Shown here: one piece after another, positions 3,455 to 46,793 of the stretch | How the letters are laid out: each line of letters opens with the position of its first letter | Position numbering within the stretch: the first letter of the stretch is position 1 | From: Anaeramoeba ignava BMAN | Lineage: Eukaryota > Protista > Anaeramoebae | DNA length: 64,000 nt | Direction of reading: 5' to 3' | Assembly: GCA_028826165.1 (NCBI GenBank) | Contig: JAPDFW010000065.1 | Location: 434,001 to 498,000 of the forward strand | Program-made: the position numbers and the translations under genes | The notes under the pieces: generated by a model | The model's input: the letters and a program-made list of their open reading frames with translations, nothing else | Told to the model about the DNA's origin: nothing | Databases searched by the model: none

Positions 3455-3539
3455 TTTTTTTAATTTCAAAAAATAAAAAATGAAAAATGAAAAAAATTAA
3501 AATCAAAAATTATTTTTTTCATTTTTTTTCTTTTCAAAA

Positions 3540-5344
3540 ATGAATGAAATTATATTTTTTGGTCAAAATGAATTCCAAAACTTATCAAAAATGAACCAAA
3601 TAAAATAATAAAACCAATTCAATTTAAATTTGAAAATGAAAATGAAAATGAAAATGAAAAACAAATTAAACAACTTTCATCAAGTGAACTTTCAACAATT
3701 TTCCTTTTTAAAAATGGAAAAGCAATAGAATATTTAGAAAATTCAAAACAAAATCCTCAAAAAATTCAAATTGAAAATATTCAAAAAGTAACTGTTAGTT
3801 GTGAAAATGAAGCTATTTTAACAATAGAAGGAAATGTATTTGCAAAAGGAAATAATATTAATCCAAAAAAACCAAAAGAATTTATCAATATTTCATCATT
3901 AATTAAAGATAAAAATGATAGAATAATTCAAGATGCTGTTTCTGGAGCTCTTGCAATTTACTTATTAACTTCAAATCAAAATGTTTATGGAATTGGCTCA
4001 AATGAATTTTGCCAACTTGGTTTTGATTCTGAAACACTTCCAAAAACAGAAAAACCAATTTTAATGATGAAAAATGTTTCTAAAATATTTTCAGGAAATA
4101 CTTCTTCTCATGTTTTTCTTTTAAATTCAAATCAAGAATTATTTGGATGCGGATATAATGAAGATGGTCAACTTGGATTAGGAGAATCAAAAAAAGAAAC
4201 AGAAATCCATAAATTAATCAAAATCCAAAATATTCCAAAAGGCAAAATAATTGATATTCAATGTGGGTTTTCTCATTCAATAATGCTGATTGAAAATGAA
4301 GATGAAAATCCAAACAGAAAACTTTATTCATGTGGAAATTATCTATTTAATGGACTTGGCAAAAATAAAAATACTTATGAATTTACTGAAATCAAATCAT
4401 CTTTATTTGAAAATGATGATAATATTCTTGATTTTTCTTGTGGAGGTTTTCATAATTTGGTTTTAACATATAAAGGGAAATTAATTGGATTTGGAAATAA
4501 TTATTCTGGTCAATTAGGAACTGGAGATACAGAAGATCAATTAATTCCAATTCAAATTGAAATTCCTAAATTAAGATTTAATGAAAATATTTCTAATTAT
4601 CATGTTTTTTGTGGAGATGACAGTTCATTTCTTTATTATTCTCCTTTTTCTTTTTCCAATCTTGAAGAAGATTTGATAAAATTATTTAGAAGAAAAGAAT
4701 TTTGTAATATTTCATTTAAAACAGAAAATGGAGAAATAATCAAAGCTCATAAATTAATATTGAAATATAGATTAAATCAAAATCAAAATGAAATTGAAAA
4801 ACTTAAAGAAATTATTTCAAAAAAATCAATTAAAGAATCAAATCAAATATTTGAAATGATTTATTCAAATAATTCCAAAATAAATCCAAAATTATATTCT
4901 GAAATTAAAGAAATTATAAATTCCAATGAAAAAATAGAAGAAACAATGAAAAGAATTTATTTAAATGAAAATGAAAATGAAAATGAAAAAGATTTTATTA
5001 TTGAAAGAAAAGAAAAACAATATAAATTTCCTAAATTAATATTAATAATGAGAAGTGAATTATATCGAGGAATGTTTTTATCTGTTACAGAAGATAAATC
5101 TAATAAAGTTACAGATTATAGTGAATTAAGTAATGAATCATTTCAAATATTTGAATATTGGATTTATTCAAATCAAATTAAAGAAGGAATTCAAATTACA
5201 CAAGAAATCATTAATGAAATTAAAATTGGAATTGATTATTTTCAATTAAATCAAACAAATCCAAATTTATTTGATTTATTAATTAAAAAATTTGATAATC
5301 AAAATCAAAAACAGAAATCAAAAGAAAAATGTTTAATTTTTTAA
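3540..5344 (+). CDS. RCC1-repeat + tandem BTB/POZ protein with C-terminal CaaX (CLIF), copy 1; 1-nt frameshift near 3573
   Basis: Near-identical to the intact 9780-11582 copy. RCC1 motifs GxNxxGQLG and BTB motifs CNISF...AHKLIL and RSELYRGMF are present. AATTCC here versus AATATCC in paralogues gives the frameshift. Confidence 0.85.
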
Positions 5345-5664
5345 TAATTAAAATTAAAATTAAAATTAAAATGTTTAATTTTTTAATAATTAAAATCGAT
5401 TTAATTTAATATTGAATTTATTTTCGTTTCATTTTAATATTTTAATTAATGAATTTAAATTTAGTTATTATTAATTTCTATTTTCAATTTTTATTTTGGT
5501 TTAATATTTTCTTTTTCATTTAATCTTCTTTTTAATAATATTTTTAATTTAAAATTAATTTTTAAAATTTGTTTTGTTTCTTATTTATTGATTTGAAGAA
5601 TTTAAATTGATTAAAAGTAAATTAAAATTGAATTGAATTTTGAAAAAAAAAAAGAAAAAAGCTT

Positions 5665-8600
5665 TTAAATAAAATAAGTTTCAAGTTCATCAACAATCCA
5701 TGAATTCTCAGAACCAGCTAAATAACTATTAGCCTCTTTTGATTTAAATTTAATTCCATCAGGTAGATTATAATTATAACCAAAATTTGAATTACCAGAT
5801 TGTAATTTCGAATTTACAACAAAATCACCTATACATATTTTAATAAAGATAAATAATTATTTAATTTAGATTTATTTAATTTTAAATTGAAATAATGATA
5901 TTATTGATTATATTAATATTTTGGATTATTTATTAATTTAATTTTAATTATAATAATAAAAATTATTTACCATCTGTTTTGATCAAGATAAATAATTAAT
6001 TAATTTAAAATTTATTTAATTTTAAATTGAAATAATGATATTATTTATTATATTTATATTTTGGATTATTTATTAATTTCATTTTAATTATAATAATAAA
6101 TTATTTACAAGCTATTTTAATAAAAATAAAATTAATTTTATTAATAATTAATAATTATTTAATTTAAAATTAATTTTATTTTTAAATTGAAATAATGATA
6201 TTATTTATTATATTAATATTTTGGATTATTTATTAATTTAATTTTAATTATAATAATAAATTATTTACGATCTATTTTAATAAAGATAAATAATTAATTT
6301 TAATAATAATTAATAATAATTTAATTTAAAATTGATTTTATTTTAAATTGAAATAATGATATTATTTATTATATTAATATTTTGGATTATTTATTAATTT
6401 AATTTTAATTATAATAATAAATTATTTACGAACTATTTTAATAAAGATAAATAATTAATTTTAATAATAATTTAATTTAAAATTAATTTTATTTTAAATT
6501 GAAATAATAATATTATTTATATTTTTGGATTATAATAATAATAATTATAATTATTTACTAACTATTTTAATCAAAATAAATAATTAATTTTAATAATAAT
6601 TAATAATTATTAAATTTAAAATTAATTTTATTTTAAATTGAAATAATGATATTATTGATTATATTTATATTTTGGATTATTTATTAATTTAATTTTAATT
6701 ATAATAATAAATATTTACAATCTATTTTAATAAAGATAAATAATTAATTTTAATAATAATTAATAATTATTAAATTTAATTTAAAATTAATTTTATTTTA
6801 AATTGAAATAATGATATTATTTATTATATTAATATTTTGGATTATTTATTAATTTAATTTTAATTATAATAATAAATTATTTACAATCTATTTTAATAAA
6901 GATAAATAATTAATTTTAATAATTAATAATTTAATTTAAAATTAATTTTATTTTTAAATTGAAATAATAATATTATTTATTAATTTAATTTTAATTATAA
7001 TAATAAATATTTACAATCTATTTTAATAAAGATAAATAATTAATTTTAATAATAATTTAATTTAAAATTTATTTTATTTTAAATTGAAATAATAATATTA
7101 TTTATTAATTTAATTTTAATTATAATAATAAATATTTACCATCTATTTTAATAAAGATAAATAATTAATTTTAATAATAATTAATAATAATTTAATTTAG
7201 ATTTATTTAATTTTAAATTGAAATAATGATATTATTTATTAATTTAATTTTAATTATAATAATAAATATTTATTATTCACATCCAAAAGCTGGACCATAA
7301 TCATAAAAATAAAAAATTGCATATTTTTGTTTTCCTTGTTGTGTTGGAAATAGATCTTCTTTTCTATCCCCTTTATCATTTCTTAATGAAAAAATAAATG
7401 CATTTGGATCTTGAATCCATCCTCCTTCAGAATTATGAGGATTCATTTTACTCCATTTTGATTTATCATTTGTCCATCCAACTTGAGTAAATCCTCCAAA
7501 AATAAAATTATCTTTTGTTTTGATAATAACTAATGTTTTTCCTTTATCATCACAAATATTATGCCATGTTTTAGAATCAAATCCATTTTTTTTTGCTGAA
7601 AATCCTTTTTTCATTTTATAACAAAAACTAGAATCATTTATCCATTCTTGTAATTTCTTAACATATTTAATCTCTGTAATAATTTCTGAATCTGAAAAAA
7701 TCTTTTGAAATTCCATCAACTCAAATCCTTGTTTGATTTCCTCAATTTCTTCCTTCCATTTCTCTTCCATTTCTTGCTTTGTGTTTTCCAATTCTTTCTG
7801 AAATGATAATTGAAGATTATGAATTTCTTCATCTTTTTTCTCATTTTGTAACTTTAAATCCAAAATTTCCTTTCTTTTTTTATCATTTTCAGATTCAAAT
7901 GATTTGATTCTTTTATCTCTTCTTTTAATTTTCTTTTCTCTTCTTTTAATTTTCTTTTCTTTTTCATTGATTTTTTGTTGATTTTCCTTATCTTGAATTT
8001 GAAAAATAGTTCTTTCAAGATTAATTAAAAACGATTTTGGAAGAAAAATATCAAATTGTTTTAATTTATCAAAATCTTGTTTTGAAATTGAATCTTTATC
8101 AAATAATGAAAAAAAAGAATGAAATAATCTTTTCTTTTCAATTCCCTTTTGTTTTTCTTTTTCTTTTTCTTTCTTTCTTTTTAATTTTTCATTTCTTTCT
8201 TTTTAATTTTTCATTTCTTTTTTGAATCCAATTATTTAAAAATTGAAAAAAATCAAATTGAAAAATTTCTTTTTTTTCTTGTTTAAATTGAATAAATTTG
8301 ATAATTTCTTCTTTAGTTAAATTGAATAAATTCTCATTATTTTGAATTTGGGAAAAATTTTGATTTATTAATTCAAAACATTTTATTTCAATTTCATTTG
8401 AATTTAAATTTCGATTTTGGAATAAAAATTGGAAAAAATTTGAATAATTAATTGAATTTAAAATTTTTTTTTGAATAATTTCTTTCAATAAATTTAATTT
8501 AAAATAAATTGAAATTTCCAATAATTGAATAAGATTTTCTTGATTCTCAAAAGAAATATTTCCATAATAAATATATTTCAAAATTGATTCCATTTCTTTT

Positions 8601-8887
8601 TTATTAAAGTTATTTAAAAATATTTTATCAATATCATTTTGTCCTTTTAAAGACTCATTAAAAAAAGGAGATCTTGAAGATAAAATTGATTTATGAACTT
8701 TAAATTCAAAAGTATTTGATCCATTCTCAACAAAAATTGAAAAATCAGTAAATGAATTTCCATTTAAAAGGTTTGAATAATCTTTAATTAAATTTTTTGT
8801 TACTTTTTTTTCTAAATTTTTCATTTCATTTTCATTTTGATTTTGATTTGCATTTTCAATTTGGTTATTATTATCATTATTATCCAT
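5665..8887 (-). CDS. BTB/POZ + coiled coil + TLDc domain protein, copy 1 (frameshift from a 22-bp tandem duplication at 8175-8218; microexon array in last intron region)
   Basis: BTB: FTDFSIFV..FKVHKSILSSRSPFF. TLDc: GFDSKTWHNICDDKGKTLVIIKT..FIFGGFT..DPNAFIFSL..GPAFG. Terminal exon 5828-5665 reads DFVVN..SNFG..YLAGSENSWIVDELETYFI*. Confidence 0.85.
5829..7280 (-). repeat. Tandem array of ten 122-163 nt GT-AG intron units separated by nine 3-nt putative microexons
   Basis: Each junction reads AAAA(T/C)AG-NNN-GTAAAT on the minus strand. Triplets: 7142-7140 ATG, 7017-7015 ATT, 6887-6885 ATT, 6721-6719 ATT, 6561-6559 TTA, 6432-6430 TTC, 6271-6269 ATC, 6111-6109 CTT, 5973-5971 ATG. Confidence 0.85.
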
Positions 8888-9284
8888 TTTGTTTTTTGTT
8901 TTTTGTTTTTGTTTTTTATGTTTTAAAAAAAAAGGAAAAAAATGAAAAAAATAAAAATGAATATTTTTTTCCATTTTTTGAAAATAAATAAAAATATAAA
9001 AAATAAGAATAAATTTAAATTAATAATTAATTTAATTTTCTTTTTAATTTATTATTTTAAATTAATTTATTAATAAATTATTATTATTTTTTATTAATTT
9101 TTATTATTAAAAAAAAAGGAAAATTATTTTAATTTAATTTTTAATTTAATTTTTTTTTTTGGAATTTAAAAATTATTAATAAATTTAAATTTTAAAACAA
9201 TTTTCTAAGTTAATATTAATTCAATTTAATTCAAAAAAAAAGATAAAATTTTAATTTCAAAAAAATCAATTTTCAAAATATTTT

Positions 9285-9705
9285 TAAATAATAAAATAAT
9301 TAAATCTAAAACAATAAATTATTATTTTAAACATAGAATTAAATATTAAATTATATTTTTTAAATTAATTTATAAATTAAATATTAAATTAAATCTATTC
9401 TTATTTTTATATTTTTATGTAAAATATTTAAATAATAAAATATTTAAATTTAAAACAATAAATTATTATTTTAATAATAAAATTAAATATTAAATTATAT
9501 TTTTAAATTAATTTATAAATTAAATATTAAATTAAATCTATTCTCATTTCTTATATTTATATGTTAAATATTTAAATAATAAAATATTAAAATTTAAAAC
9601 ATTAAATTATTATTTTAATAATAAAATTAAATATTAAATTATATTTTCAAATTAATTTATAAATTAAATATTAAATTAAACTATTCTCATTTTTTATATT
9701 TAATA
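9285..9705. repeat. ~143-bp AT-rich tandem repeat (3 units) between divergent BTB-TLDc and RCC1-BTB genes
   Basis: The unit with TAAAACAATAAATTATTATTTT...AAATTAAATCTATTCT recurs at ~9301, ~9444 and ~9588. Confidence 0.75.
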
Positions 9706-9779
9706 AACAAATTTTCAAAATATTTTTCCAAATTAATAAAATTCCAAAATTATTTTTTTCATTTTTTTTCTTTTTAAAA

Positions 9780-11582
9780 ATGAATGAAATTATATTTTTT
9801 GGTCAAAATGAATATCCAATCCTTTTCAAAAATGAATCAAATAAAATAATAAAACCAATTCAATTTAAATTTGAAAATGAAAATGAAAATGAAAATGAAA
9901 ATGAAAAACAAATTAAACAACTTTCATCAAGTGAACTTTCAACAATTTTCCTTTTTGAAAATGGAAAAGCAATAGAATATTTAGAAAATTCAAAACAAAA
10001 TCCTCAAAAAATTCAAATTGAAAATATTCAAAAAGTAACTGTTAGTTGTGAAAATGAAGCTATTTTAACAATAGAAGGAAATGTATTTGCCAAAGGATAT
10101 AATATTAATCCAAAAAAACCAAATAATTTTATCAATATTTCATCATTAATTAAAAATAAAAATGATAGAATAATTCAAGATATTGTTTCTGGAGATAGTT
10201 CAATTTATTTATTAAGTTCAAATCAAAATGTTTATGGAATTGGTTCTAATTATTCTGGTCAACTTGGTTTTGATTCTGATGCACTTGATGAAACAAAAAA
10301 ACCAATTTTAATGATGAAAAATGTTTCTAAAATATTTTCAGGAAATACTTCTTCACATGTTTTTCTTTTAAATTCAAATCAAGAATTATTTGGATGCGGA
10401 TATAATGAAGATGGTCAACTTGGATTAGGAGAATCAACAAAAGAAGAAACAGAAATCCATAAATTAACCAAAATCCAAAATATTCCAAAAGGCAAAATAA
10501 TTGATATTCAATGTGCAGATTCTCATTCAATAATTTTGATTGAAAATGAAAATGAAAACAGAAAACTTTATTCATGTGGAAATTATTCATATAATGGACT
10601 TGGCAAAAATAAAAATACTTATGAATTTACTGAAATCAAATCATCTTTATTTGAAAATGATGATAATATTCTTGATTTTTCTTGTGGAGGTTTTCATAAT
10701 TTGATTTTAACAACTAAAGGGAAATTAATTGGATTTGGAAATAATTATTCTGGTCAATTAGGAACTGGAGATACAGAAGATCAATTAATTCCAATTCAAA
10801 TTAAACTTCCTAAATTAAGATTTAATGAAAATATTTCTAATTATCATGTTCTTTGTGGAGATGACAGTTCATTTCTTTATTATTCTCCTTTTTCTTTTTC
10901 CAATCTTGAAGAAGATTTGATAAAATTATTTAGAAGAAAAGAATTTTGTGATATTTCATTTAAAACCAAAAATGGAGAAATAATCAAAGCTCATAAATTA
11001 ATATTGAAATATAGATTAAATCAAAATCAAAATGAAATTGAAAAACTTAAAGAAATTATTTCAAAAAAATCAATTAAAGAATCAAATCAAATATTTGAAA
11101 TGATTTATTCAAATAATTCCAAAATAAATCCAAAATTATATTCTGAAATTAAAGAAATTATAAATTCAAATGAAAAAATTGAAGAAACAATGAAAAGAAT
11201 TTATTTAAATGAAAATGAAAATGAAAAAGATTTTATAATTGAAAGAAAAGATAAAGAATATAAATTTCCTAAATTAATATTAATAATGAGAAGTGAATTA
11301 TATCGAGGAATGTTTTTATCTGTTACAGAAGATAAATCTAATAAAGTTACAGATTATAGTGAATTAAGTAATAAATCATTTCAAATATTTGAATATTGGA
11401 TTTATTCAAATCAAATTAAAGAAGGAATTCAAATTACACAAGAAATCATTGATGAAATTAAAATTGGAATTGATTATTTTCAATTAAATCAAACAAATCC
11501 AAATTTATTTGATTTATTAATTAACAAATTTAATAATCAAAATCAAAAACAGAAATCAAAAGAAAAATGTTTAATTTTTTAA
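9780..11582 (+). CDS. RCC1-repeat + tandem BTB protein with CaaX (CLIF), copy 2 (intact)
   Basis: 600-aa intronless ORF with GxNxxGQLG repeats, two BTB-like domains and the ending KSKEKCLIF. Confidence 0.92.
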   Translation: MNEIIFFGQNEYPILFKNESNKIIKPIQFKFENENENENENEKQIKQLSSSELSTIFLFENGKAIEYLENSKQNPQKIQIENIQKVTVSCENEAILTIEGNVFAKGYNINPKKPNNFINISSLIKNKNDRIIQDIVSGDSSIYLLSSNQNVYGIGSNYSGQLGFDSDALDETKKPILMMKNVSKIFSGNTSSHVFLLNSNQELFGCGYNEDGQLGLGESTKEETEIHKLTKIQNIPKGKIIDIQCADSHSIILIENENENRKLYSCGNYSYNGLGKNKNTYEFTEIKSSLFENDDNILDFSCGGFHNLILTTKGKLIGFGNNYSGQLGTGDTEDQLIPIQIKLPKLRFNENISNYHVLCGDDSSFLYYSPFSFSNLEEDLIKLFRRKEFCDISFKTKNGEIIKAHKLILKYRLNQNQNEIEKLKEIISKKSIKESNQIFEMIYSNNSKINPKLYSEIKEIINSNEKIEETMKRIYLNENENEKDFIIERKDKEYKFPKLILIMRSELYRGMFLSVTEDKSNKVTDYSELSNKSFQIFEYWIYSNQIKEGIQITQEIIDEIKIGIDYFQLNQTNPNLFDLLINKFNNQNQKQKSKEKCLIF

Positions 11583-11902
11583 TAATTAAAATTAAAATTA
11601 AAATTAAAATGTTTAATTTTTTAATAATTAAAATCGATTTAATTTAATATTGAATTTATTTTCGTTTCATTTTAATATTTTAATTAATGAATTTAAATTT
11701 AGTTATTATTAATTTCTATTTTCAATTTTTATTTTGGTTTAATATTTTCTTTTTCATTTAATCTTCTTTTTAATAATATTTTTAATTTAAAATTAATTTT
11801 TAAAATTTGTTTTGTTTCTTATTTATTGATTTGAAGAATTTAAATTGATTAAAAGTAAATTAAAATTGAATTGAATTTTGAAAAAAAAATGAAAAATAGT
11901 TT

Positions 11903-14575
11903 TTAAATGAAATAAGTTTCAAGTTCATCAACAATCCATGATTCATAAGAACCAGCTAAATAACTATAAGATTCATTTGTTCCATATTTAATTCCATCAG
12001 GTAGATTATAACTATTGCCAAAATTGGAACGGCCAGATTGTAAATTAGGTTTTATCCAAAAATCACCTATACATATTTTAATAAAGATAAATAATTAATT
12101 TTAATAATAATTAATAATAATTTAATTTAAAATTGAAATAATAATATTATTTATTATATTAATATTTTGGATTATTTATTAATTTAATTTTAATTATAAT
12201 AATAAAAATTAATTTTAATAATAATAAAAATAATTTAATTTACCCCCTTTGGTTTAAACCTTTTTAATAAAGGAAAAAATAACTTTTTAATTTTTAATTG
12301 CAAAATTTAAACCTTTTACAAAATATTTAAACCTTTTGCAAAAATTTTAAATTTAAAATTAACTTTTTATTTTAAATTGAAATAATAATATTTTTTTATT
12401 ATATTGAATTATTTATTAATTTAAATTTAATTATAATAATAAATATTTACAAACTATTTTAATAAGGGATAAATAATTAATTTTAATAATAATTAAATAA
12501 TAATTTGTTTTTTTAAAATTAAATTTATTTTAAATTGAAATAATAATATTATTTATTATATTAATATTTTTGAATTATTTATTAAATATAAAATATTTAT
12601 ATTTACTCCCTATTTTAATAAAGATAAATAATTAATTTTTAATAATAATTAATAAAAATTTAATTTTAAAAGGTTTAAAATTTTTATTTTAAATTGAAAA
12701 AATAAATATTATTTATTATATTAATATTTTGGATTATTTATTAATTTTAAATTTAATTATAATAATAAGTATTTACCATCTATTTTTAATAAGGATAAAT
12801 AATTAATTTTAATAATAATTAATAATAATTTAATTTATATTTATTTAATTTTTAAATTGAAATAATAATATTATTTATTAATTTAAATTTAATTATAATA
12901 ATAAGTATTTACCATCTATTTTAATAAAGATAAATAATTAATTTTAATAATAATTAATAATAATTTAATTTAAAATTAATTTTATTTTAAATTTAAATAA
13001 TATTATTATTTATTAATGTAAATTTAATTATAATAATAAATATTTACCATCTATTTTAATAAGGATAAATAATTAATTTTAATAATAATTAATAATAATT
13101 TAATTTTAAATTAAATTTATTTTAAATTGAAATAATAATATTATTTATTAATTTAATTTTAATTATAATAATAAATATTTATATTTACTCCCAAAAGTTG
13201 GACCATCACTTAAACACCAAATAATTGCATATCCTTCCCTTTCTTTATTAATTGTAAACTTCTGTGGGTCTCTATCTCCTTTATCATTTCTTAATGAAAA
13301 AATAAATGCATTTGGATCTTTCATATATCCAAAATAACCTCCATCATAATTCCATTTTGATTTATCATTTGTCCATCCAACTTGAGTAAATCCTCCAAAA
13401 ATAAAATTATCTTTTGTTTTGATAATAGATAACGTTGTTCCTTTCCCATCAACTGATTTATGCCAATTTTGAGAATTAAATCCATCTCTTTTGGCTGAAA
13501 ATCCTTTTTTCATTTTGGAAAAAAAATCATTATCATTTATCCATTCTTGTAATTTCTTAACATATTCAATATCTGTAATAATTTCTGAATCTGAAAAAAT
13601 CTTGTGTAATTCATTTAATTCAAACCCTGGTTTCATTTTCTCAATTTCTTTCTCTTTATCTTCAATTTCAATTTTCATTTGTTGATTTTCTTTCTCTTTA
13701 TTTTCAATTTCTTTTTGATTATCTTGAATAACTTTGTTTTGAATATCAACTAAAAAAGATTTGGGAAAAAAACAATCAAATTGTTTTAATTTATCAAAAT
13801 CTTGTTTTGAAATTGAATCTTTATCAAATAATGAAAAAAAAGAATGAAATAATCTTTTCTTTGCATTCATTTTGTGTTTATATTTCCTTAATTTTAATTT
13901 TTCATTTCTTTTTTCAATCCAATTATTTAAAAATTGAAAAAAATCAAATTGAAAAATTTCTTTTTTTTCTTGTTTAAATTGAATAAATTTGATAATTTCT
14001 TCTTTAGTTAAATTGAATAAATTCTCATTATTCTGAATTTGGGAAAAATTTTTATTTATTAATTCAAAACATTTTATTTCAATTTCATTTGATTTTAAAT
14101 TTCGATTTTGGAATAAAAATTGGAAAAAATTTGAATAATTAATTGAATTTGAAATTTTTTTTTGAATAAATTCTTTCAATAAATTTAATTTAAAATAAAT
14201 TGAAATTTCCAATAATTGAATAAGATTTTCTTGATTCTCAAAAGAAATATTTCCATAATAAATATAACTCAAAATTGATTCCATTTCTTTTTTATTAAAT
14301 TGATTTAAAGAAATAGAAAGAGATTCTTGCCTTAATGACTCATTAAAAAAAGGAGATCTTGAAGATAAAATTGATTTATGAACTTTAATTTCAAAAGGAT
14401 TTGATCCATTCTCAACAAAAATTGAAAAATCAGTAAATGAATTTCCATTTAAAAGGTTTGAATAATCTTTAATTAAATTTTTTGTTACTTTTTTTTCTAA
14501 ATTTTTCATTTCATTTTCATTTTGGTTTTGATTTTGATTTGCATTTTCAATTTGGTTATTATTATCATTATCCAT
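11903..14575 (-). CDS. BTB/POZ + TLDc domain protein, copy 2 (intact; microexon array in last intron region)
   Basis: Exon 14575-13189 ends GPTFG-A|GTAAAT. Terminal exon 12066-11903 reads DFWIKPNLQSGRSNFG..YLAGSYESWIVDELETYFI*. Confidence 0.9.
12067..13188 (-). repeat. Second tandem intron / 3-nt microexon array
   Basis: AG-NNN-GT junctions at 13050-13048 ATG, 12915-12913 ATG, 12779-12777 ATG, 12609-12607 GGA and 12453-12451 TTT. A possible GGG at 12246-12244 lies in noisy sequence. Confidence 0.78.
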
Positions 14576-14989
14576 TTTGTTTTTTGTTTTGTTTTTTGTT
14601 TTGTTTTTTGTTTTTGTTTTTTGTGTTTTAAAAAAAAATGAAAAAAATGAAAAAAATAAAAATGAATATTTTTTTCCATTTTTTGAAAATAAATAAAAAT
14701 ATAAAAAATGAGAATAAATTTAAATTAATAATTAATTTAATTTTCTTTTTGATTTATTATTTTAAATTAATTTATTAATAAATTATTATTATTTTTTATT
14801 AATTTTTTTTATTAAAAAAAAAGGAAAATTATTTTAATTTAATTTTTAATTTAATTTTTTTTTTGGAATTTAAAAATTAATAATAAATTTAAATTTTAAA
14901 AACAAATTTCCAAATTAATATTAATTCAATTTAATTCAAAAAAAAAGATAAAATTTTAATTTCAAAAAAATCAATTTTCAAAATATTTT

Positions 14990-15555
14990 TAAATAATAAA
15001 ATATTTAAATCTAAAACAATAAATTATTATTTTAAACATAGAATTAAATATTAAATTATATTTTTAAATTAATTTATAAATTAAATATTAAATTAAATCT
15101 ATTTTCATTTTTTATATTTATATGTAAAATATTTAAATAATAAAATATTTAAATATAAAACATTAAATTATTATTTTAAACATAAAATTAAATATTAAAT
15201 TATATTTTTAAATTAATTTATAAATTAAATATTAAATTAAACCTATTCTCATTTCTTATATTTATATGTTAAATATTTAAATAATAAAATATTTAAATCT
15301 AAAACAATAAATTATTATTTTAAACATAAAATTAAATATTAAATTATATTTTTAAATTAATTTATAAATTAAATATTAAATTAAATCTATTCTTATTTTT
15401 TATATTTATATGTTAAATATTTAAATAATAAAATATTAAAATTTAAAACATTAAATTATTATTTTAATAATAAAATTAAATATTAAATTATATTTTCAAA
15501 TTAATTTATAAATTAAATATTAAATTAAACTATTCTCATTTTTTATATTTAATAA
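14990..15555. repeat. ~144-bp AT-rich tandem repeat (4 units), paralogue of 9285-9705
   Basis: The same unit recurs at ~15005, ~15150, ~15295 and ~15437. Confidence 0.75.
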
Positions 15556-15639
15556 ACAAATTTTCAAAATATTTTTCCAAATTAATAAAATTCCAAAAAT
15601 TATTTTTTTCATTTTTTTCATTTTTTTTCTTTTTCAAAA

Positions 15640-17471
15640 ATGAATGAAATTATATTTTTTGGTCAAAATGAATATCCAAAACTTTTCAAAAATAAATCAT
15701 ACGAAATAACAAAACCAATTCAATTTAAATTTGAAAATGAAAATGAAAATGAAAATGAAAATGAAAATGAAAAACAAATTAAACAAATTTCATCAAGCGA
15801 ACTTTCAACAATTTTCCTTTTTAAAAATGGAAAAGCAATAGAATATTTAGAAAATTCAAAAACAAAAATCCTCAAAAAATCCAAATTGAAGAAAATATTC
15901 AAAAAGTAACTGTTGGTTGTGAAAATGAAGCTATTTTAACAATAGAAGGAAATGTATTTGCAAAAGGAAATAATATTAATCCAAATAATTCAAATAATTT
16001 TATCAATATTTCATCATTAATTGAAGATAAAAATGATAGAATAATTGAAGATATTGTTTCTGGAGCTTATTCAATTTACTTATTAACTTCAAATCAAAAT
16101 GTTTATGGAATTGGTGCAAATTATTATGGTCAACTTGGTTTTGATTCTGAAACACTTTTCAATACAGAAAAACCAATTTTAATGATGAAAAATGTTTCTA
16201 AAATATTTTCAGGAAATAATTCTTCACATCATTTTTTTCTTTTAAATTCAAATCAAGAATTATTTGGATGCGGATATAATGAATCTGGTCAACTTGGATT
16301 AGGAGAATCAACAAAAGAAGAAAAAAAAATCCAAAAATTAATCAAAATCCAAAATATTCCAAAAGGCAAAATAATTGATATTAAATGTGCAGATTCTCAT
16401 TCAATAATGTTGATTGAAAATGAAAATGAAGATGAAAATCCAAACAGAAAACTTTATTCATGTGGAAATTATCAATATAATGGACTTGGCAAAAATAAAA
16501 ATACTTATGAATTTACTGAAATCAAATCATCTTTATTTGAAAATGATGATAATATTCTTGATATTTCTGTTGGAGTTAATCATACTTTGATTTTAACATA
16601 TAAAGGGAAATTAATTGGATTTGGAAATAATTATTCTGGTCAATTAGGAACTGGAGATACAGAAGATCAATTAATTCCAATTCAAATTAAACTTCCTAAA
16701 TTAAGATTTAATGAAAATATTTCTAATTATCATGTTTTTTGTGGAGATGACAGTTCATTTCTTTATTACTCTCCTTTTTCTTTTTCCAATCTTGAAGAAG
16801 ATTTGATAAAATTATTTAGAAGAAAAGAATTTTGTGATATTTCATTTAAAACCAAAAATGGAGAAATAATCAAAGCTCATAAATTAATATTGAAATACAG
16901 ATTAAATCAAAATCAAAATGAAATTGAAAAACTTCAAGAAATTATTTCAAAAAAATCAATTAAAGAATCAAATCAAATATTTGAAATGATTTATTCAAAC
17001 AGAATAATAAATCCAAAATTATATTCTGAAATTAAAGAAATTATAAATTCCAATGAAAAAATTGAAGAAACAATGAAAAGAATTTATTTAAATGAAAATG
17101 AAAATGAAAATGAAAAAGATTTTATAATTGAAAGAAAAGAAAAACAATATAAATTTCCTAAATTAATATTAATAATGAGAAGTGAATTATATCGAGGAAT
17201 GTTTTTATCTGTAACTGAAGATACTTCTAATAAAGTTACAGATTATAGTGAATTAAGTAATAAATCATTTCAAATATTTGAATATTGGATTTATTCAAAT
17301 CAAATTAAAAAAGAAATCGAAATTACACAAGAAATAATTGATGAAATTAAAATTGGAATTGATTATTTTCAATTAAATCAAACAAATCCAAATTTATTTG
17401 ATTTATTAATTAACAAATTTGATAATCAAAATCAAAAACAGAAATCAAAAGAAAAATGTTTAATTTTTTAA
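15640..17471 (+). CDS. RCC1-repeat + tandem BTB protein with CaaX (CLIF), copy 3; frameshift in A-runs near 15858-15869
   Basis: ORFs 15640-15909 and 16182-17471 join by homology to copies 2 and 4. There are extra A residues in TCAAAAACAAAAATCC. Confidence 0.85.
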
Positions 17472-17619
17472 TAATTAAAATTAAAATTAAAATTAAAATT
17501 AAAATTAAAATTAAAATTAAAATTAAAATTAAAATTAAAATTAAAATTAAAATTAAAATTAAAATTAAAATTAAAAATAAAAATCCAAAATTCATTTTTT
17601 CATTTTTTTCTTTTCAAAA

Positions 17620-19434
17620 ATGAATGAAATTATATTTTTTGGTTTAAATGAATATCCAAAACTTTTCAAAAATGAACCAGATAGAATAAAAAAACCAATT
17701 CAATTTAAATTTGAAAATGAAAATGAAAATGAAAAACAAATTAAACAAATTTCTTCTTCAAATTATTCAACAATTTTCCTTTTTGAAAATGGAAAAGCAA
17801 TAGAATATTTAAGAGATTCAAAACAAAATCCTCAAAAAATCCAAATTGAAGAAAATATTCAAAAAGTAACTTTTGGTGATGAAAATGAAGCTATTTTAAC
17901 AATAGAAGAAAATGTATTTGCCAAAGGATATGATATTAATCCAAAAAAACCAAATAAATTTATCAACATTTCATCATTAATTGAAGATACAAATGATAGA
18001 GTAATTGAAGATATTGTTTCTGGAGCTTATTCAATTTACTTATTAACTTCAAATCAAAATGTTTATGGAATTGGTGCAAATTATTATGGTCAACTTGGTT
18101 TTGATTCTGAAACACTTTTCAATACAGAAAAACCAATTTTAATGATGAAAAATGTTTCTAAAATATTTTCAGGAAATGCTTCAAAATTTGTTTTTCTTTT
18201 AAATTCAAATCAAGAATTATTTGGATGTGGCGATAATAATTCTGGACAAATTGGATTAGGAGAATCAAGAAAAGATGAAAAAATCCAAAAATTAACCAAA
18301 ATCCAAAATATTCCAAAAGGCAAAATAATTGATATTAAATGTGCAGATTCTCATTCAATAATGTTGATTGAAAATGAAAATGAAAATCCAAACAGAAAAC
18401 TTTATTCATGTGGAAATTATCAATATAATGGACTTGGCAAAAATAAAAATACTTATGAATTTACTGAAATCAAAACATCTTTATTTGAAAATGATGATAA
18501 TATTCTTGATTTTTCTGTTGGAAGTTTTCATAATTTGATTTTAACATCTAATTCAAAATTAATTGGATTTGGAAATAATTCTTTTGGTCAACTAGGAACT
18601 GAAACTGGAGCTGGAGATACAGAAGATCAATTAATTTCAATTCAAATTGAACTTCCTAAATTAAGATTTAATGAAAATATTTCTAATTATCATATTTCTT
18701 GTGGAGAATTCAAATCATTTCTTTATTACTCTCCTTTTTCTTTTTCCAATCTTGAAGAAGATTTGATAAAACTATTTGAAAGAAAAGAATTTTGTGATAT
18801 TTCATTTAAAACCAAAAATGGAGAAATAATCAAAGCTCATAAATTAATATTGAAATATAGATTAAATCAAAATCAAAATCAAATTGAAAAACTTCAAGAA
18901 ATTATTTCAAAAAAATCAATTAAAGAATCAAATCAAGTATTTGAAATGATTTATTCAAATAATTCCAAAATAAATCCAATATTATATTCAGAAATTAAAG
19001 AAATTATAAATTCAAATGAAAAAATAGAAGAAACAATGAAAAGAATTTATTTAAATGAAAATGAAAATGAAAAAGAAAAAGATTTTATAATTGAAAGAAA
19101 AGAAAAACAATATAAATTTCCTAAATTAATATTAATAATGAGAAGTGAATTATATCGAGGAATGTTTTTATCTGTAACTGAAGATACTTCTAATAAAGTT
19201 ACAGATTATAGTGAATTAAGTAATAAATCATTTCAATTATTTGAATATTGGATTTATTCAAATCAAATTAAAGAAGAAATTCAAATTACACAAGAAATAA
19301 TTAATGAAATTAAAATTGGAATTGATTATTTTCAATTAAATCAAACAAATCCAAATTTATTTGATTTATTAATTAACAAATTTAATAATCAAAATCAAAA
19401 ACAGAAATCAAAAGAAAAATGTTTAATTTTTTGA
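17620..19434 (+). CDS. RCC1-repeat + tandem BTB protein with CaaX (CLIF), copy 4 (intact)
   Basis: 604-aa ORF with the same architecture as the other copies. Confidence 0.92.
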   Translation: MNEIIFFGLNEYPKLFKNEPDRIKKPIQFKFENENENEKQIKQISSSNYSTIFLFENGKAIEYLRDSKQNPQKIQIEENIQKVTFGDENEAILTIEENVFAKGYDINPKKPNKFINISSLIEDTNDRVIEDIVSGAYSIYLLTSNQNVYGIGANYYGQLGFDSETLFNTEKPILMMKNVSKIFSGNASKFVFLLNSNQELFGCGDNNSGQIGLGESRKDEKIQKLTKIQNIPKGKIIDIKCADSHSIMLIENENENPNRKLYSCGNYQYNGLGKNKNTYEFTEIKTSLFENDDNILDFSVGSFHNLILTSNSKLIGFGNNSFGQLGTETGAGDTEDQLISIQIELPKLRFNENISNYHISCGEFKSFLYYSPFSFSNLEEDLIKLFERKEFCDISFKTKNGEIIKAHKLILKYRLNQNQNQIEKLQEIISKKSIKESNQVFEMIYSNNSKINPILYSEIKEIINSNEKIEETMKRIYLNENENEKEKDFIIERKEKQYKFPKLILIMRSELYRGMFLSVTEDTSNKVTDYSELSNKSFQLFEYWIYSNQIKEEIQITQEIINEIKIGIDYFQLNQTNPNLFDLLINKFNNQNQKQKSKEKCLIF

Positions 19435-25446: not shown

Positions 25447-28400
25447 TTAATTCTTCTTTTTCTGCTTTTTCTGCTTCAACAAACTATCAAATTGACCTTT
25501 AAAAGCAACATATCTTTGATATCTTTGAGTAATATCATTAAGAAGTTGGTCTTGTTTGAGTTTTGCATCATCAGGGAAAGTAGACTTAAGACTTTCAAAA
25601 CGATTCTCTGATTTCAAGAATTCATGGAAACCTGGCTTTGGTTTTGAGGAGTCAAGAACCATTGGGTTTTTTCCTAAGGCGAGTAAGTTAGGATCATAAC
25701 GATAAAGAAGATAATATCCTTTACTGATTGCTTCTTTTGCATGAGCAGGTCCGATTCCGAGACCGTTCTTGATGCCGTGCTCGATGCAAGGGCAGTAAGC
25801 AATGACGAGGGAAACGCCTTTGTGCTTCTCTGCCTCTGTAATTGCCTTGATGGCCTGAGTGGGGTTAGCAGAGAGACAGATGGATGCGACATAAACATTT
25901 CCATAGGTGATTGCCATCATCCCAAGATCCTTCTTTGCCGTGGTTTTTCCTGATGCTGTGAACTTCGCTACTCCCGCTCGCGGTGTCGATTTGGATGACT
26001 GCCCTCCGGTGTTGGAATAGACCTCAGTGTCAAGTACTAGAAGATTCACATCTTCCCCACTCGCTAATATGTGATCAACTCCCCCATAGCCAATGTCATA
26101 CGCCCAGCCGTCTCCGCCTTGTATCCATATAGACTTCTTCGCGAGAAGATCTTTGTTTTTGTAGATGTAATTCATCGCGTTTTCTGTCTCGTTTGAAAAT
26201 TCGGAAAAAATGGATTTTTTTGAATTTGTTTCGAAAAGATGTTTTTTGGATTCTAAATATTTCTGGATTTCTTGGGAAACGTTATTGGATTCAACGCGAT
26301 CATCGAAAACATCGATCCATTTGCGAAGAAGCGATGTGAGAACGGGGTCTTTTTCAAAGAGATCCTTTGCGAGAAAGTCCTTGATATAAGCCATCAATTT
26401 GACTCTGAGTTGAGAAACTGATTTGGCGATTCCGAGACCGTATTCGGCATTATCTTCAAAAAGGGAGTTTCCCCAAGCAGGACCATGACCAAGACTGTTT
26501 GAGGTGTAAGGATTCCAGGGGAAAGTTCCGCCCCACACGGATGAGCATCCAGATGCGTTTGCGATGATCATCTGGTCTCCGAAAAGCTGAGTAACCAGCT
26601 TGATAACTGGCGTCTCTCCGCATCCAGCGCAAGCGCCAGAGAACTCAAGAAGAGGTTGTGAAAATTGACTGCCTTTGAGAGTGGTTGTTTTGTAGATACT
26701 ATCCCGTGTCGGGAGTTTCATCATGTAATCCCAATTATCTCCGTGTTTTGTCTTCATAGTTTCTGACGGAACCATTTGAAGACAGTTTTCGGGACATGCG
26801 TTCGCACATACGGTGCATCCTGTGCAATCAAACGGGGAAATTTGGATCGTGAATTTATATTCCTTTGTTTTTGGATCCTCGAGAACATCAATAACCTCAG
26901 GATAAGGCGCTTTGTTTTTTTCTTCCTCGGAAATGAAAAAAGGTCGAATTGCTGCGTGCGGACAAAGCACAGAGCACATGTTGCATTGAATGCACTTGCT
27001 CGAATCCCATTTAGGCACAAAATCAGAGAATCCTCGTTTCTCATATTTACTTGTTCCTGAAGGAATTTTCCCTGCGAAATCAAGTTTAGTCAAAGGTAGA
27101 TTATCCCCCTTCATTGCTAAAATTGGTCGCATTACATCCCGTACAAACTGCGGATCTTGAACAATGATTTTCTTTGGGATTGTTTGAAGATCGTTTTCTG
27201 GATCAGCATCCTTCCATGTCTCGGGATACTTGATCTCAATAATGTTCCGTATTCCGGTGTCAACTGCGTCCTTGTTTTTCTGCACAATATCCTCACCCTT
27301 CCGCATATACTCTTTCTCAATCGCCTTCTTTAGAAGCCCGATGGCTTTGTCTTCCGGAAGAACATTACTCAATTTGAAGAATACTGCCTGCATGATCATG
27401 TTGATTCTTCCGCTCAATCCAACCTCATCCGCAATTTTTGATGCGTCGATGTTATAGAATTGCAGTTTTTTGCGTGCAATCTGTCTTTTCACGTTATTTG
27501 GAAGATTTTTCTCAAGTTCCTCAATAGTGTTCCATGGTGAGTTGAGGATGAATTTACTCCCCGGTTTTGCTGGATTCAGAAGATGATCATATTTTCCAAG
27601 ATAAGATTTCAAATGGCAGGCAATATAATCCGAATCGGTAATCATATAAGAGGAATCAATATGTTTTGGACCGAAACGGAGATGTGAAATTGTTACACCA
27701 CCAGACTTGTGAGCAGAATAGGCGAAATAACCCTGTCCATACAAAGGTGTATTTTCCACAATGATTTTGATTGCGTTCTTATTGGCTCCCACAGTTCCAT
27801 CAGAACCCATTCCCCAGAAAATACATTGTTTTGTACCTTGAGGCACGGCATCGATATTTTCTCCGAAACTCAACGAAGTATTCAAAATATCATCAGTGAT
27901 TCCGACAGTAAAATTGTTTTTCGGATTCAATTGATTCAAATTATCGTAAATTGAGCGAACCATTGCGGGTGTGAATTCCTTACCACCAATTCCGAATCTC
28001 CCACCGATAACTTCGATGTTCTTTCCATGAACCGCAGAGACGACGTCTGATTGGAGAGGTTGAGACGGTGCTCCGTTCTCTTTTACTCGATCAAGAACGG
28101 CGATTCTTTTGACCGTTTTTGGCAACGCACTCAAAAAATGTTCCACAGAAAAAGGTCGATATAACCGAACCTTAATGAGCCCGATTTTCTCATTGGGGAA
28201 TTTCTCAATTATCTCTTCCACAGGAGACGCTCCCGATCCCATTACAACAACAACTCTCTCTGCCTCAGGATGGCCGAGATAATCAAACAAACGATATTGT
28301 CTGCCTGTTTTTTCTGCAAATTGGTCCATGTATTGCTGAACAATATAAGGAACTTTGTTATAATATCTGGCGGTTTCCTCAATAAACTGGAAATACACAT

Positions 28401-31021
28401 CTGTGCCCTGAACAGTTCCTCTCAGATGCGGGTGTTCAGGATTTAAGGATTTTTCTCTGTGTTTCTCAATGGCTTGGTAGTCCACCATTTTCTTCATCAA
28501 TTCAGGATTTAAAACATCGACTGAATTAACTTCGTGGGAAGTTCTGAAACCGTCAAAGAAATGAAGGAAAGGAATAGAAGATTGAATTGTGGCGAGATGT
28601 GATATAAAGCCTAAGTCCATAACTTCCTGGACTGTTCCCGAGCTCATCATTGCGAATCCTGTTTGTCTTGTTGCCATTACGTCTGAATGATCACAGAAGA
28701 TGGATAAACCTTGTCCTCCTACAAGTCGAGAGCTTATGTGGAATACTGCTGGCATTAATCCCCCAGCTATTTTGTACATGTTGGGAATCATCAGAAGTAA
28801 TCCTTGAGATGCTGTGAATGTTGTTGCTAATGCTCCTGCTGCTACTGCTCCGTGAAGTGCTCCTGCTGCTCCTCCTTCAGATTGCATTTCTGTTACTTGT
28901 AATGGTATTCCGAAAATGTTTTTTTTCCCTTCTGCGCTCCATTTATCTGCGAGTTCTCCCATTGTACTTTTTATTTAAATATTTATTAGATTTAATTATT
29001 TATTAAATTTATATATTTATTTGATTTGAATTAAATATTTATTTGATTTGAATTAAATTAAATATTTATTAGATTTGAATTAAATATTGATTTAAATATT
29101 TAAAGATTTATTTGATTTAAATATTTATTTGATTTAAATTAAATATTGATTTGAATTAAATATTTGATTTGATTTGATTTGATTTAAATTAAATATTTAT
29201 TTGATTTGATTTGATTTAAATTAAATATTGATTTGATTTGATTTGATTTGATTTGATTTAAATATTTATATATTGATTTGATTTAATTATTTATTTGATT
29301 TAATTTAAATATTTATTTGATTTAATTTGAATTAAATATTTATTTGATTTGAATTAAATTAAATATTTATTAGATTTAATTTAAATATTGATTTGATTTG
29401 ATTTGATTTGATTTGATTTGATTTTAATTAAATATTTATTTGATTTAAATTAAATATTTATTTGATTTTAATTAAATATTTATTTGATTTGAATTAAATA
29501 TTGATTTGATTTAAATATTTATTAGATTTGATTTGATTTAAATTAAATATTTATTTGATTTAATTTAAATATTTATATATTGATTTAATTTAAATATTTA
29601 TTTGATTTGATTTAAATATTTATTAGATTTAATTTTATTTGAATTAAATATTTATTTGATTTAATTTAAATATTTATTTGATTTGATTTGAATTAAATAT
29701 TTATTAAATTAAAGATTTATAAGATTTGGAAAATAAATTGATGATTCATTGGTCGATTTTGCGAATAGATGATCGAAAAATTGGCCAAAAATCATTTTCT
29801 TTAATAACACATCTTTTTGAGCCATTTCTTTTGTTTGTTGTTGAGAAGAAAGGGGTCGAGAAAGTTTATAATACTGATAACAAAAATAAAACTTCTCAAA
29901 TTTATTTTGCTTTTTTTTTCTTTTATTTGAATAACTTCTTGCAATTTTGAAATAACCATTTTATTCTCAATAAGTTTTATATTTGTTTTTTATTTTTAAA
30001 TTTGAATCAATTTAATTTATAGTTGAGATATAAGGAGTTCTTTTTCAAAACTATTAAAATTTATATGTTCTCCCATTTTGGTAAAAAAATCACTCTATGC
30101 AAAAAGTTTGAAATTATATTTTATTGATGAAAAAGATATTCTTTTTTTTACCAAAATGGGAGAAGATGTCTAAAATACTCAAATAAAAAATGAACAAGAA
30201 AATTTCCATTGTATGTAATTGACATCTAAAAGAAATCAATAAAGAATTGTTGATAACTTTTTGAAATATTTTGTCATTGTAATGAAATTAAAAACAAAGA
30301 TCCTTTCATACAATGAAGAAAGAATAATCTGAAGAGATAATTTATTTTCAAAATCTAATGAAAAGATTATTCTATTCTCTTAATTCATTTGTTAGAATAA
30401 AAAATCCAAAATCATTTGTCAAAGAAGAGAAAGAATCAAGAAGAGAAATTGAATTGAATTGAGAGATTAGATGAGAAAAGAAACTATTGATTCAAATTGA
30501 CAAAATCGATTCAAAATATGAAGAAAAAGAAAAAGAAAATTTTAATAAAGAATGAAAAAAACAATAAAAAATTTTGAATTTGGTTATTTCATTTTTAGTC
30601 AAAAAATCTCTTCTTTGTTTTTATCAGAAAAATAATCGATAACAAAGGAAATTATTTCATATATTATCAATAACTCTCAAATTTAGAAAGATAGCATCTT
30701 TTCGCAAAATCGACCATTGTTATTTTAAATAAAATTAAATAAAATTAAAAAAATAGAAACACTTACGTTGCTGGAGTAATTGGATATAAAAAAGCTACAT
30801 CACTCATCATATAACCAATATAAGCAGCTGCTGTGTTTCCATCCATTGGTTCTTTTGTCTAATTTACAAAAAAAAAAAGAAGAAAATTAACAAAAAAATT
30901 ATTTAATAAAATTTTTATTGATTTTTTTTTTTTGATTTAAAAAATTTTTTTTTACTGAAAACATTTTAAAAAGTGAATTACTTATGATCTTCTTCTTAAT
31001 TTTTTTTGTTGTCTGTAACAT
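25447..31021 (-). CDS. PFO: Pyruvate:ferredoxin oxidoreductase with N-terminal organellar-type leader
   Basis: Exons 31021-30956, 30858-30767 and 28966-25447. Motifs MDGNTAAA, YPITPA, EMQSEGGAAG, two CxxCxxCxxxCP, SGACAGCGE, and the TPP motif GGDGWAYDIG...EVYSNTGGQ. Confidence 0.97.
28975..29715. repeat. (ATTTG/ATTTA)n degenerate pentamer satellite in PFO intron 2
   Basis: Direct inspection of the sequence. Confidence 0.8.
29747..30719. mobile_element. Putative non-autonomous DNA transposon (MITE-like), ~973 bp, 25-bp terminal inverted repeats, inside PFO intron 2
   Basis: 29747-29771 CATTGGTCGATTTTGCGAATAGATG matches the reverse complement of 30695-30719, CAATGGTCGATTTTGCGAAAAGATG, at 23/25 positions. 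The interior is complex sequence, unlike the other introns. No clear target-site duplication. Confidence 0.7.
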
Positions 31022-44942: not shown

Positions 44943-46758
44943 TTAATTTTGATTATCAAATTTGTTAATTAATAAATCAAATAAATTTGGATTTGTTTGA
45001 TTTAATTGAAAATAATCAATTCCAATTTTAATTTCATCAATCATTTCTTTTGTAATTTCAATTTCATCTTTAATTTGATTTGAATAAATCCAATATTCAA
45101 ATATTTGAAATGATTTATTACTTAATTCACTATAATCTGTAACTTTATTAGATTTATCTTCAGTTACAGATAAAAACATTCCTCGATATAATTCACTTCT
45201 CATTATTAATATTAATTTGGGAAATTTATATTGTTTTTCTTTTCTTTCAATTATAAAATCTTTTTCATTTTCATTTTCATTTTCATTTAAATAAATTCTT
45301 TTCATTGTTTCTTCTATTTTTTCATTTAAATTTATAATTTCTTTAATTTCAGAATATAATTTTGGATTTATTATTCTGTTTGAATAAATCATTTCAAATA
45401 TTTGATTTGATTCTTTAATTGATTTTTTTGAAATAATTTCTTTAAGTTTTTCAATTTGATTTTGATTTTGATTTAATCTATATTTCAATATTAATTTATG
45501 AGCTTTGATTATTTCTCCATTTTCTGTTTTAAATGAAATATCACAAAATTCTTTTCTTTCAAATAATTTTATCAAATCTTCTTCAAGATTAGAAAAAGAA
45601 GAAAAGAAAGGAGAATAATAAAGAAATGATTTTTCATATCCACAAGAAAGATGATAATTAGAAATATTTTCATTAAATCTTAATTTAGGAAGTTTAATTT
45701 GAATAGGAATTAATTGATTTGATAGATTTCCAGTTCCTAATTCACCCCAATCATTTTCTCCAAATACTATAATCTTGCCTTTGGAAGTTAAAATCAAATT
45801 ATGAAAAGTTCCAACAGAAAAATCAAGAATATTATTATCATTTTCAAATAAAAATGATTTGATTTCAGTAAATTCATAAGTATTTTGGTATTTTTTGCCA
45901 AGTCCATTATCTTCCCAAGAACCACATGAATAAAGTTTTCTTTTTGGATTTTGATTTTGATTTTGATTTTGATTTTGATTTTGATTTTCATCTTCAATCA
46001 ACATTATTGAACGTAAATATCCAGATTGAATATCAATTATTTTGCCTTTTGGAATATTTTGTATTTTGGTTAATTTTTGGATTTTTTCTTCTTTTCTTGA
46101 TTCTCCTAATCCAAGTTGACCATAAATATTATCTCCGCATCCAAATAATTCTTGATTTGAATTTAAAAGAAAAATATGATGAGAAGAATTTCCTGAAAAT
46201 ATTTTAGAAACATTTTTCATCATTAAAATTGGTTTTTCTGTTTTTGGAAGTGTTTCAGAATCAAATCCAAGTTGACCATATTTATTTGAACCAATTCCAT
46301 AAACATTTTGATTTGAAGTTAATAAATAAATTGAATCAGATCCAGAAACAATATCTTGAATTATTCTATCATTTGTATCTTCAATTAATGATGAAATATT
46401 GATAAATTTATTTGGATTATCTGGATTAATATCTATTCCTTTGGCAAATACATTTCCTTCTATTGTTAAAATAGCTTCATTTTGAAAACCAATAGTTACT
46501 TTTTGAATATTTTCTTCAATTTGGATTTTTGAAGGATTTTGTTTTGAATCATTTTCTTTTAAATATTCTATTGCTTTTCCATTTTCAAAAAGGAAAATTG
46601 TTGAAAAATAACCTGTTGAAATTTGTTTAATTTGTTTTTCATTTTTCATTTTCATTTTCATTTTCAAATTTAAATTGAATTGGTTTTTTTATTGAATTTG
46701 GTTCATTTTTGATAAGTTTTGGATATTTATTTTGACCAAAAAATATAATTTCATTCAT
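44943..46758 (-). CDS. RCC1-repeat + tandem BTB protein, copy 5 (no CaaX; frameshift near 46645-46665)
   Basis: The MNEIIFFGQNKYPK start at 46758 joins the 574-aa ORF. It ends KFDNQN*. Confidence 0.85.
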
Positions 46759-46793
46759 TTTTGAAAAGTAAAAAAATGAAAAAAATAATTAAA

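Follow-up and report, generated by a model that had tools for sequence, protein, structure and literature searches.

An unusual gene of Anaeramoeba ignava raises the question of whether an exon can be as short as a single codon, and what a long run of such exons would do for the protein. In the window (the whole 64,000-nucleotide stretch of contig JAPDFW010000065.1 that was analysed), the coding sequence of a BTB-TLDc gene is interrupted by a repetitive stretch that an earlier note on this DNA had read as ten introns separated by nine variable triplets, included in different combinations. The explanation we favour, at about an even chance of being right, is that each triplet is a translated 3-nt exon, that the series builds up a β-turn loop in the TLDc domain, every unit adding a codon, and that the loop is diversified mainly in the DNA. 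The triplet layout occurs at a fixed position in some 45–50 members of the family, and its triplets evolve in a coding-like manner.

Organisation of the array

The gene lies at positions 5665–8887 on the minus strand (Table 1) and corresponds to the NCBI model KAJ5075458.1 (P0060). Its product begins with an Asn/Gln-rich region, followed by the BTB domain. The 3′ end of exon 1 encodes GPAFG plus one base, giving a phase-1 junction, and the 1,452 nt that follow start with GTGAAT and end with TATGTATAG. This stretch contains nine internal AG-NNN-GTAAAT sites, all at the one phase-1 site after GPAFG. A GT lies exactly 3 nt after nine of the 11 AG dinucleotides present; shuffled sequences averaged 0.11 such pairs and never had more than 3. 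In a small sample, the donors (GTAAAT) and acceptors (AAAATAG) resemble the ordinary sites of neighbouring genes.

Table 1. Features of the BTB-TLDc gene and its tandem paralog, in window positions
Feature	Position	Strand	Basis
Exon 1, BTB-coiled coil-TLDc gene	7281–8887	−	ORFs, Pfam BTB and TLD, frames
Array: ten related introns of 122–163 nt with nine triplets between	5829–7280	−	
Triplet 1, ATG	7140–7142	−	
Triplet 2, ATT	7015–7017	−	
Triplet 3, ATT	6885–6887	−	
Triplet 4, ATT	6719–6721	−	
Triplet 5, TTA	6559–6561	−	
Triplet 6, TTC	6430–6432	−	
Triplet 7, ATC	6269–6271	−	
Triplet 8, CTT	6109–6111	−	
Triplet 9, ATG	5971–5973	−	
Terminal exon: bases GT, then DFVV...ELETYFI and stop; C-terminal part of TLDc	5665–5828	−	
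Tandem paralog, exon 1 (BTB-TLDc), frame open to GPTFG and its donor	13189–14575	−	ORFs, Pfam
Paralog array: seven introns, six triplets, matching site	12067–13188	−	
Paralog triplets ATG ATG ATG GGA TTT GGG	13048–50, 12913–15, 12777–79, 12607–09, 12451–53, 12244–46	−	
Paralog terminal exon	11903–12066	−	

Reading of the minus strand confirms the nine triplets described in the earlier note, their order and their phase-1 position between GPAFG and DF, and gives the same translations: FG-YDYYFIHPYG-DF with every triplet included and FG-C-DF with all of them skipped. The prediction that all 2^9 patterns would be free of stops also holds, since none of the 512 subsets contains one; together they specify 255 distinct peptides. 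The acceptor thought to be common to all ten units is shared by the internal sites, but the last unit has a different one, AAAATATGTATAG, in a form that is conserved family-wide.

Ahead of the TLDc domain, exon 1 as assembled carries a +1 frameshift near positions 8190–8220, with a TGA at 8189; this may be an assembly error or a real lesion. A 22-bp direct duplication in an A-rich stretch at window positions 8148–8220 (minus strand) shifts the frame, and the public model P0060 spans the lesion by an intron that deletes conserved coding sequence.

At window positions 3500–17700 an RCC1-BTB and BTB-TLDc gene block is repeated in tandem, its best pieces being 92–95% identical, and further RCC1-BTB copies lie at 17620–19434 and 44943–48653. 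Upstream of both BTB-TLDc genes is a 144-bp AT-rich tandem repeat of 3–4 copies (9283–9702 and 14988–15551). Elsewhere in the window, an MCM5 gene (59320–63274, minus strand) contains an intein-like insert of about 350 residues that matches PF14890 below the curated cut-off; inteins are already known in Anaeramoeba (PMC10710043). A pyruvate:ferredoxin oxidoreductase and a PARP-domain protein with a long Asn-Gln repeat (25447–28962 and 39450–42086, minus strand) are ordinary for A. ignava.

Distribution of the arrays in the genome

Across the A. ignava assembly (42.8 Mb, 147 contigs), the exact motif TTAAAATAG-NNN-GTAAATA has 367 matches, and the control 1. The 3-nt spacer accounts for these 367 of 387 matches, with spacers of 2 nt found seven times and of 4 nt 13 times. 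From the matches about 45–50 loci are implied, and 32 arrays were read directly. All 32 sit at one phase-1 site of the TLDc domain and contain from one to about 30 triplets; their lengths range from 0.5 to 3.8 kb, with introns of 53–200 nt, and 264 of 271 units are 3 nt long, all in phase 1. Within a cluster every motif match is on the gene strand, no inverted unit being seen. The first donor and last acceptor of the arrays are conserved, unlike the internal sites. The genome contains 556 TLDc candidates, and at least two further TLDc genes have the same intron with zero triplets.

About one third of the arrays contain a 4- or 5-nt unit, which may be a polishing error. Two arrays, L036 (C35:350757–354000) and L056 (C93:981000–986300), combine AAT, AAC and AGA triplets with 4- and 5-nt units and lost units; in-order joining gives a stop in both, and they may be decaying or misassembled. 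Their AGA triplet could also serve as an alternative acceptor, leaving a 1-nt exon. At C122:81793–81873 (G000, minus strand) an internal-type acceptor and GTA lead without interruption into the terminal exon, a layout that would result from precise loss of the last intron or represent an ancestral single-intron form.

Public gene models show the array as one long intron, or end after the first triplet; they are unable to represent 3-nt exons and carry no weight on this question. A protein collection that includes an A. ignava transcriptome source yielded no transcript-derived proteins of array genes, the array motif had no match in metagenome contigs, and an Rfam search gave no match. Ten distant family representatives are all from A. 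ignava, and the family tree is poorly resolved, being compatible with a single origin of the array or with several. The A. ignava genome paper (PMC11550330) describes a nanopore assembly polished with short reads using Pilon. It counts 32,108 introns, whose modal length is 76 nt and whose GC content is 8%, and mentions neither microexons nor TLDc genes.

Probable coding character of the triplets

A neutral repeat predicts equal divergence of triplets and introns, and this prediction fails. Over 237 unit pairs, which include related copies so that their independence is overstated, triplet positions 1, 2 and 3 differ in 62, 21 and 65% of cases, and the introns of the same pairs by 1.3%. Within the array of Table 1 the three positions differ by 56, 0 and 78%, and the introns by 4%. 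Because the exon is phase 1, position 2 of the triplet falls at the wobble base of a codon. Of 264 units, 230 have T at this position and none has C, always a synonymous change from T (related copies again being counted rather than independent events); in the introns, T-sites have 62 changes to C and six to G, C being about ten times more frequent. A base other than T at position 2 alters the amino acid in 18 of 23 cases, judged in the genomic context. The GC content is 28% in the triplets and 4% in the arrays. The prevalence of T may in part reflect what splicing favours, or T may just be ancestral.

Read in the predicted frame, the triplet variation follows the genetic code, and we think it likely that the triplets are translated. 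At the level of genomic sequence, the claim that these are real coding microexons is indirectly supported by the hypervariability of the triplets between near-identical introns, by the wobble pattern and by the 3-nt length of 367 in 387 matches.

Possible fossil cDNAs were considered among the intronless relatives. The loops of four parse at the protein level into array-type triplets, and three of these are ordinary codons in the DNA. A candidate at C59:281696 fits array triplets, yet within chance, and was rejected as evidence. This intronless loop (C59:281696–281733, plus strand; G000, P0143) reads GGAT, then TTA TTG ATT CTC CTG, all array-type triplets, then GTGAT; it is possible that it represents a fused array copy.

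In-order joining and free subsets

In the favoured explanation each triplet would spell out one codon of the β-turn loop. An exon of 3 nt has no room for both splice complexes at the same time, so the introns would be removed successively, each step adding one triplet to the growing upstream exon, and neighbouring triplets would usually be joined in genomic order. Some skipping is nevertheless likely, because the acceptors are near-identical. The main alternative makes such skipping the principal source of diversity, with a subset of triplets in each transcript and tens to thousands of loops per gene; we regard it as possible, though doubtful.

The two can be compared in the 19 clean arrays, which contain 3-nt units only. 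Joined in order, these give no stop in 221 junction codons, a stop avoidance that by itself is not significant (P 0.03–0.17); Asp, Tyr and Phe abound in the resulting loops. Adjacent triplets show a dependence between the last base of one and the first two bases of its successor (p 0.002–0.01, with related arrays and runs removed), although block duplication can mimic such a signal. The last triplet also fits the residue that precedes the conserved Asp in the family (p ∼0.02). Both signals favour frequent in-order joining, and such dependence on order argues against combinatorial inclusion as the main source.

Combinatorial inclusion finds support in 16 of the 19 clean arrays, in which no sampled subset contains a stop, and in the 255 peptides available from the array of Table 1; the other three arrays have stops in 13–26% of random subsets. 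Triplets that start with AA, AG or GA were absent from this gene, a pattern first taken as protection of every splicing combination. The pattern extends to the family, with no GA-starting and 19 GG-starting triplets among the genome-wide exact matches, and AA, AG and GA starts in 4.5% of array triplets as against 34.5% in intronless loops. The harmless CA and TA starts are likewise depleted, however, A being generally scarce at position 2, so that avoidance of stops is not specifically demonstrated by this pattern. Moreover, in the main set, a stop-avoiding base precedes each of the six triplets that carry a stop risk, the two seemingly broken arrays aside, which counts against free inclusion. 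Free 2^n inclusion is thus one possible source of diversity among others: most arrays would tolerate it, while the order signals, the three arrays with stops and the existence of a DNA-level source count against it.

Loop length bears on the same choice. The loops of intronless relatives are short and Gly-rich, with a mode of 3 residues, against a median of about 10 for full inclusion; this weighs against the favoured explanation, and inclusion of one to three triplets would give the family's usual length. If the 4- and 5-nt units and the stops in L036 and L056 are real, full inclusion breaks those genes, and dead or frame-shifting units would be easier to tolerate if they were skipped. Combinatorial inclusion also assigns a direct benefit to the introns. 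A further point against the favoured explanation is that the gene of Table 1 is frameshifted as assembled.

Change of the units in the DNA

Four tandem paralogs on contig C1, 2–5% apart, have 15, 16, 25 and about 30 units, and their introns have diverged enough for the units to be matched one by one. Between two of these genes, with 16 orthologous units, the introns differ at 23 of 1,331 sites (1.7%) and the triplets at 5 of 48 bases (P 0.0014). The triplet order is identical over 13 of the 16 units. Unit 2 has changed between ATG and GGG, and unit 6 between GGG and ATG, the adjacent flank having changed too in each case; at unit 3 each of the four genes has a triplet of its own. A link between triplets and variants of the flanks holds over 18 arrays (p 0.002–0.014).

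Gain and loss of units, together with the triplet swaps, provide direct evidence of what would be a second, DNA-level source of diversity. We infer that unequal crossing-over would add or remove one codon per unit and that short gene conversion between identical splice flanks would exchange whole triplets, with selection maintaining the differences between triplets while the introns homogenise.

The TLDc domain and its loop

The TLDc profile PF07534 scores 51.9 and 59.3 bits, against a curated cut-off of 24.5, and the BTB domain PF00651 is found at the N-terminus (E 8.7e-17). With every triplet skipped, as annotated, the domain is modelled with the TLDc fold (pLDDT 95.8), and the model superimposes on NCOA7 (7obp) with a Z-score of 20.1 and an rmsd of 2.0 Å over 159 residues. 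In this model the array site is a β-turn between strands 143–144 and 148–150. Its probable counterpart in Ncoa7 is the glycine-rich bend in which the mutation G896A abolishes V-ATPase binding; such binding is known for mammalian TLDc members (PMC8608904).

In a natural intronless paralog the turn carries a 28-residue insert, and the core fold is kept in the model, which suggests that long loops at this turn are compatible with the fold. The intronless TLDc cluster at C13:545000–586000 (L004, L009–L011, L025) has Tyr/Asn/Gln-rich inserts of 9–28 residues at the same turn, and is a second route to variation of the TLDc loop.

The simplest reading is that the arrays would provide BTB adaptors with a variable loop for binding, the likely product being an adaptor family with an Asp/Tyr/Phe-rich loop. 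A Cullin-3 adaptor role, suggested by the BTB domain, is putative, and V-ATPase-like or microbial partners for the loop are guesses. A more ambitious proposal has two layers, in which stochastic inclusion of 3-nt exons in each cell, with every codon set by the neighbours that are joined, and triplet swapping in the DNA between identical intron flanks would together create in this free-living protist a loop library at single-codon resolution, with thousands to millions of variants across about 50 BTB-TLDc genes, for anticipatory recognition of foreign or symbiont proteins to be degraded. We consider this speculative and rather unlikely.

Other explanations

It is improbable, in our judgement, that splicing takes out the entire array as a single intron. 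The triplets would then never enter mRNA, and the array would be either an intronic minisatellite in the course of expansion or a silent codon store. Full skipping would preserve the frame and the conserved Asp, the first donor and terminal acceptor are distinct and conserved, and the same intron lacks triplets altogether in at least two genes. The long intron of the public models has also been counted in its favour, but those models could not show 3-nt exons in any case. What such an intron leaves unexplained is an approximately 50-fold excess of divergence confined to three bases, together with the wobble pattern, the contrast of 28% with 4% GC and the strict 3-nt length.

A mobile, introner-like intron, inserted repeatedly into existing loop codons, would account for near-identical introns within and between genes, but it is largely refuted by the single TLDc site shared by all 32 arrays that were read; moreover the triplets are not target-site duplications and are unlike the codons of intronless loops, in which GA and AA starts are common, so that we think it very unlikely. 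Equally remote is the creation or scrambling of the triplets by nanopore consensus and short-read polishing in AT-rich repeats: the assembly was made in this way with Pilon (PMC11550330), indels are present in nearby coding DNA and the 2- and 4-nt units resemble homopolymer or merge errors, yet errors would not hit two of three bases while sparing introns of 175 nt that are 1–3% different, and separate paralogs keep their triplet order over 13 of 16 orthologous units.

Comparison with known systems

If the triplets are spliced in, the arrays would be an extreme of exon structure, with up to about 30 consecutive 3-nt exons, and a natural test bed for spliceosomal handling of exons below the size that exon definition requires. 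They would constitute a class of coding sequence invisible to all aligners and gene callers, in which a loop evolves codon by codon and introns serve as recombination arms. A. ignava itself is an anaerobe that carries symbionts, and its BTB family is greatly expanded. The literature searched contained no described precedent for the triplet-exon layout, and its closest relatives lie in several different systems.

Dscam is also built of tandemly duplicated exon-intron units, with one domain-sized exon chosen per cluster. The units in A. ignava are 3 nt long, and no feature of their arrangement, with introns of at least 53 nt, imposes mutual exclusion. The PRDM9 zinc-finger minisatellite is a tandem array in concerted evolution with a few hypervariable coding positions; the A. 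ignava array likewise appears to evolve in concert, except that the homogenised part is coding in PRDM9 and intronic here, where coding would be confined to the variable triplet. Introners are near-identical introns at many unrelated sites, whereas the arrays read in A. ignava occupy one TLDc site. Recursive splicing shares the use in succession of an adjacent acceptor and donor, a use that in A. ignava is predicted, but it involves zero-length AG/GT sites in introns longer than 10 kb (PMC13149111), in place of a 3-nt spacer and introns of 53–200 nt. The array system is neither recursive splicing nor an introner.

The micro-exon genes (MEGs) of Schistosoma, and SmVAL6, share with the arrays runs of tiny frame-preserving exons able to vary a protein by skipping (PMC4015677), and in both the exons are symmetric and a multiple of three (3 nt, phase 1, in 264 of 271 A. 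ignava units). MEGs encode mostly secreted proteins, with microexons making up as much as 75% of the coding sequence, and transcripts show that exons are skipped (PMC4015677). The A. ignava triplets, in contrast, were read in genomic DNA and would amount to less than 2% of the coding sequence (27 nt of ∼1.8 kb); they lie between cloned introns in one loop of an intracellular-type BTB-TLDc protein, with each loop codon split across two neighbouring pieces. In the ROCO LRR and NB-ARC TPR genes of Ectocarpus there is similarly one module per exon, and exon number varies between recent paralogs through DNA-level shuffling with diversifying selection in an expanded family of candidate recognition proteins; these modules, however, are whole 72-nt repeats among which inverted exons occur, as against one codon and no inverted unit seen in A. 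ignava (PMC3341825). The array system thus resembles both the MEGs and the shuffling seen in Ectocarpus, yet fails the defining features of each.
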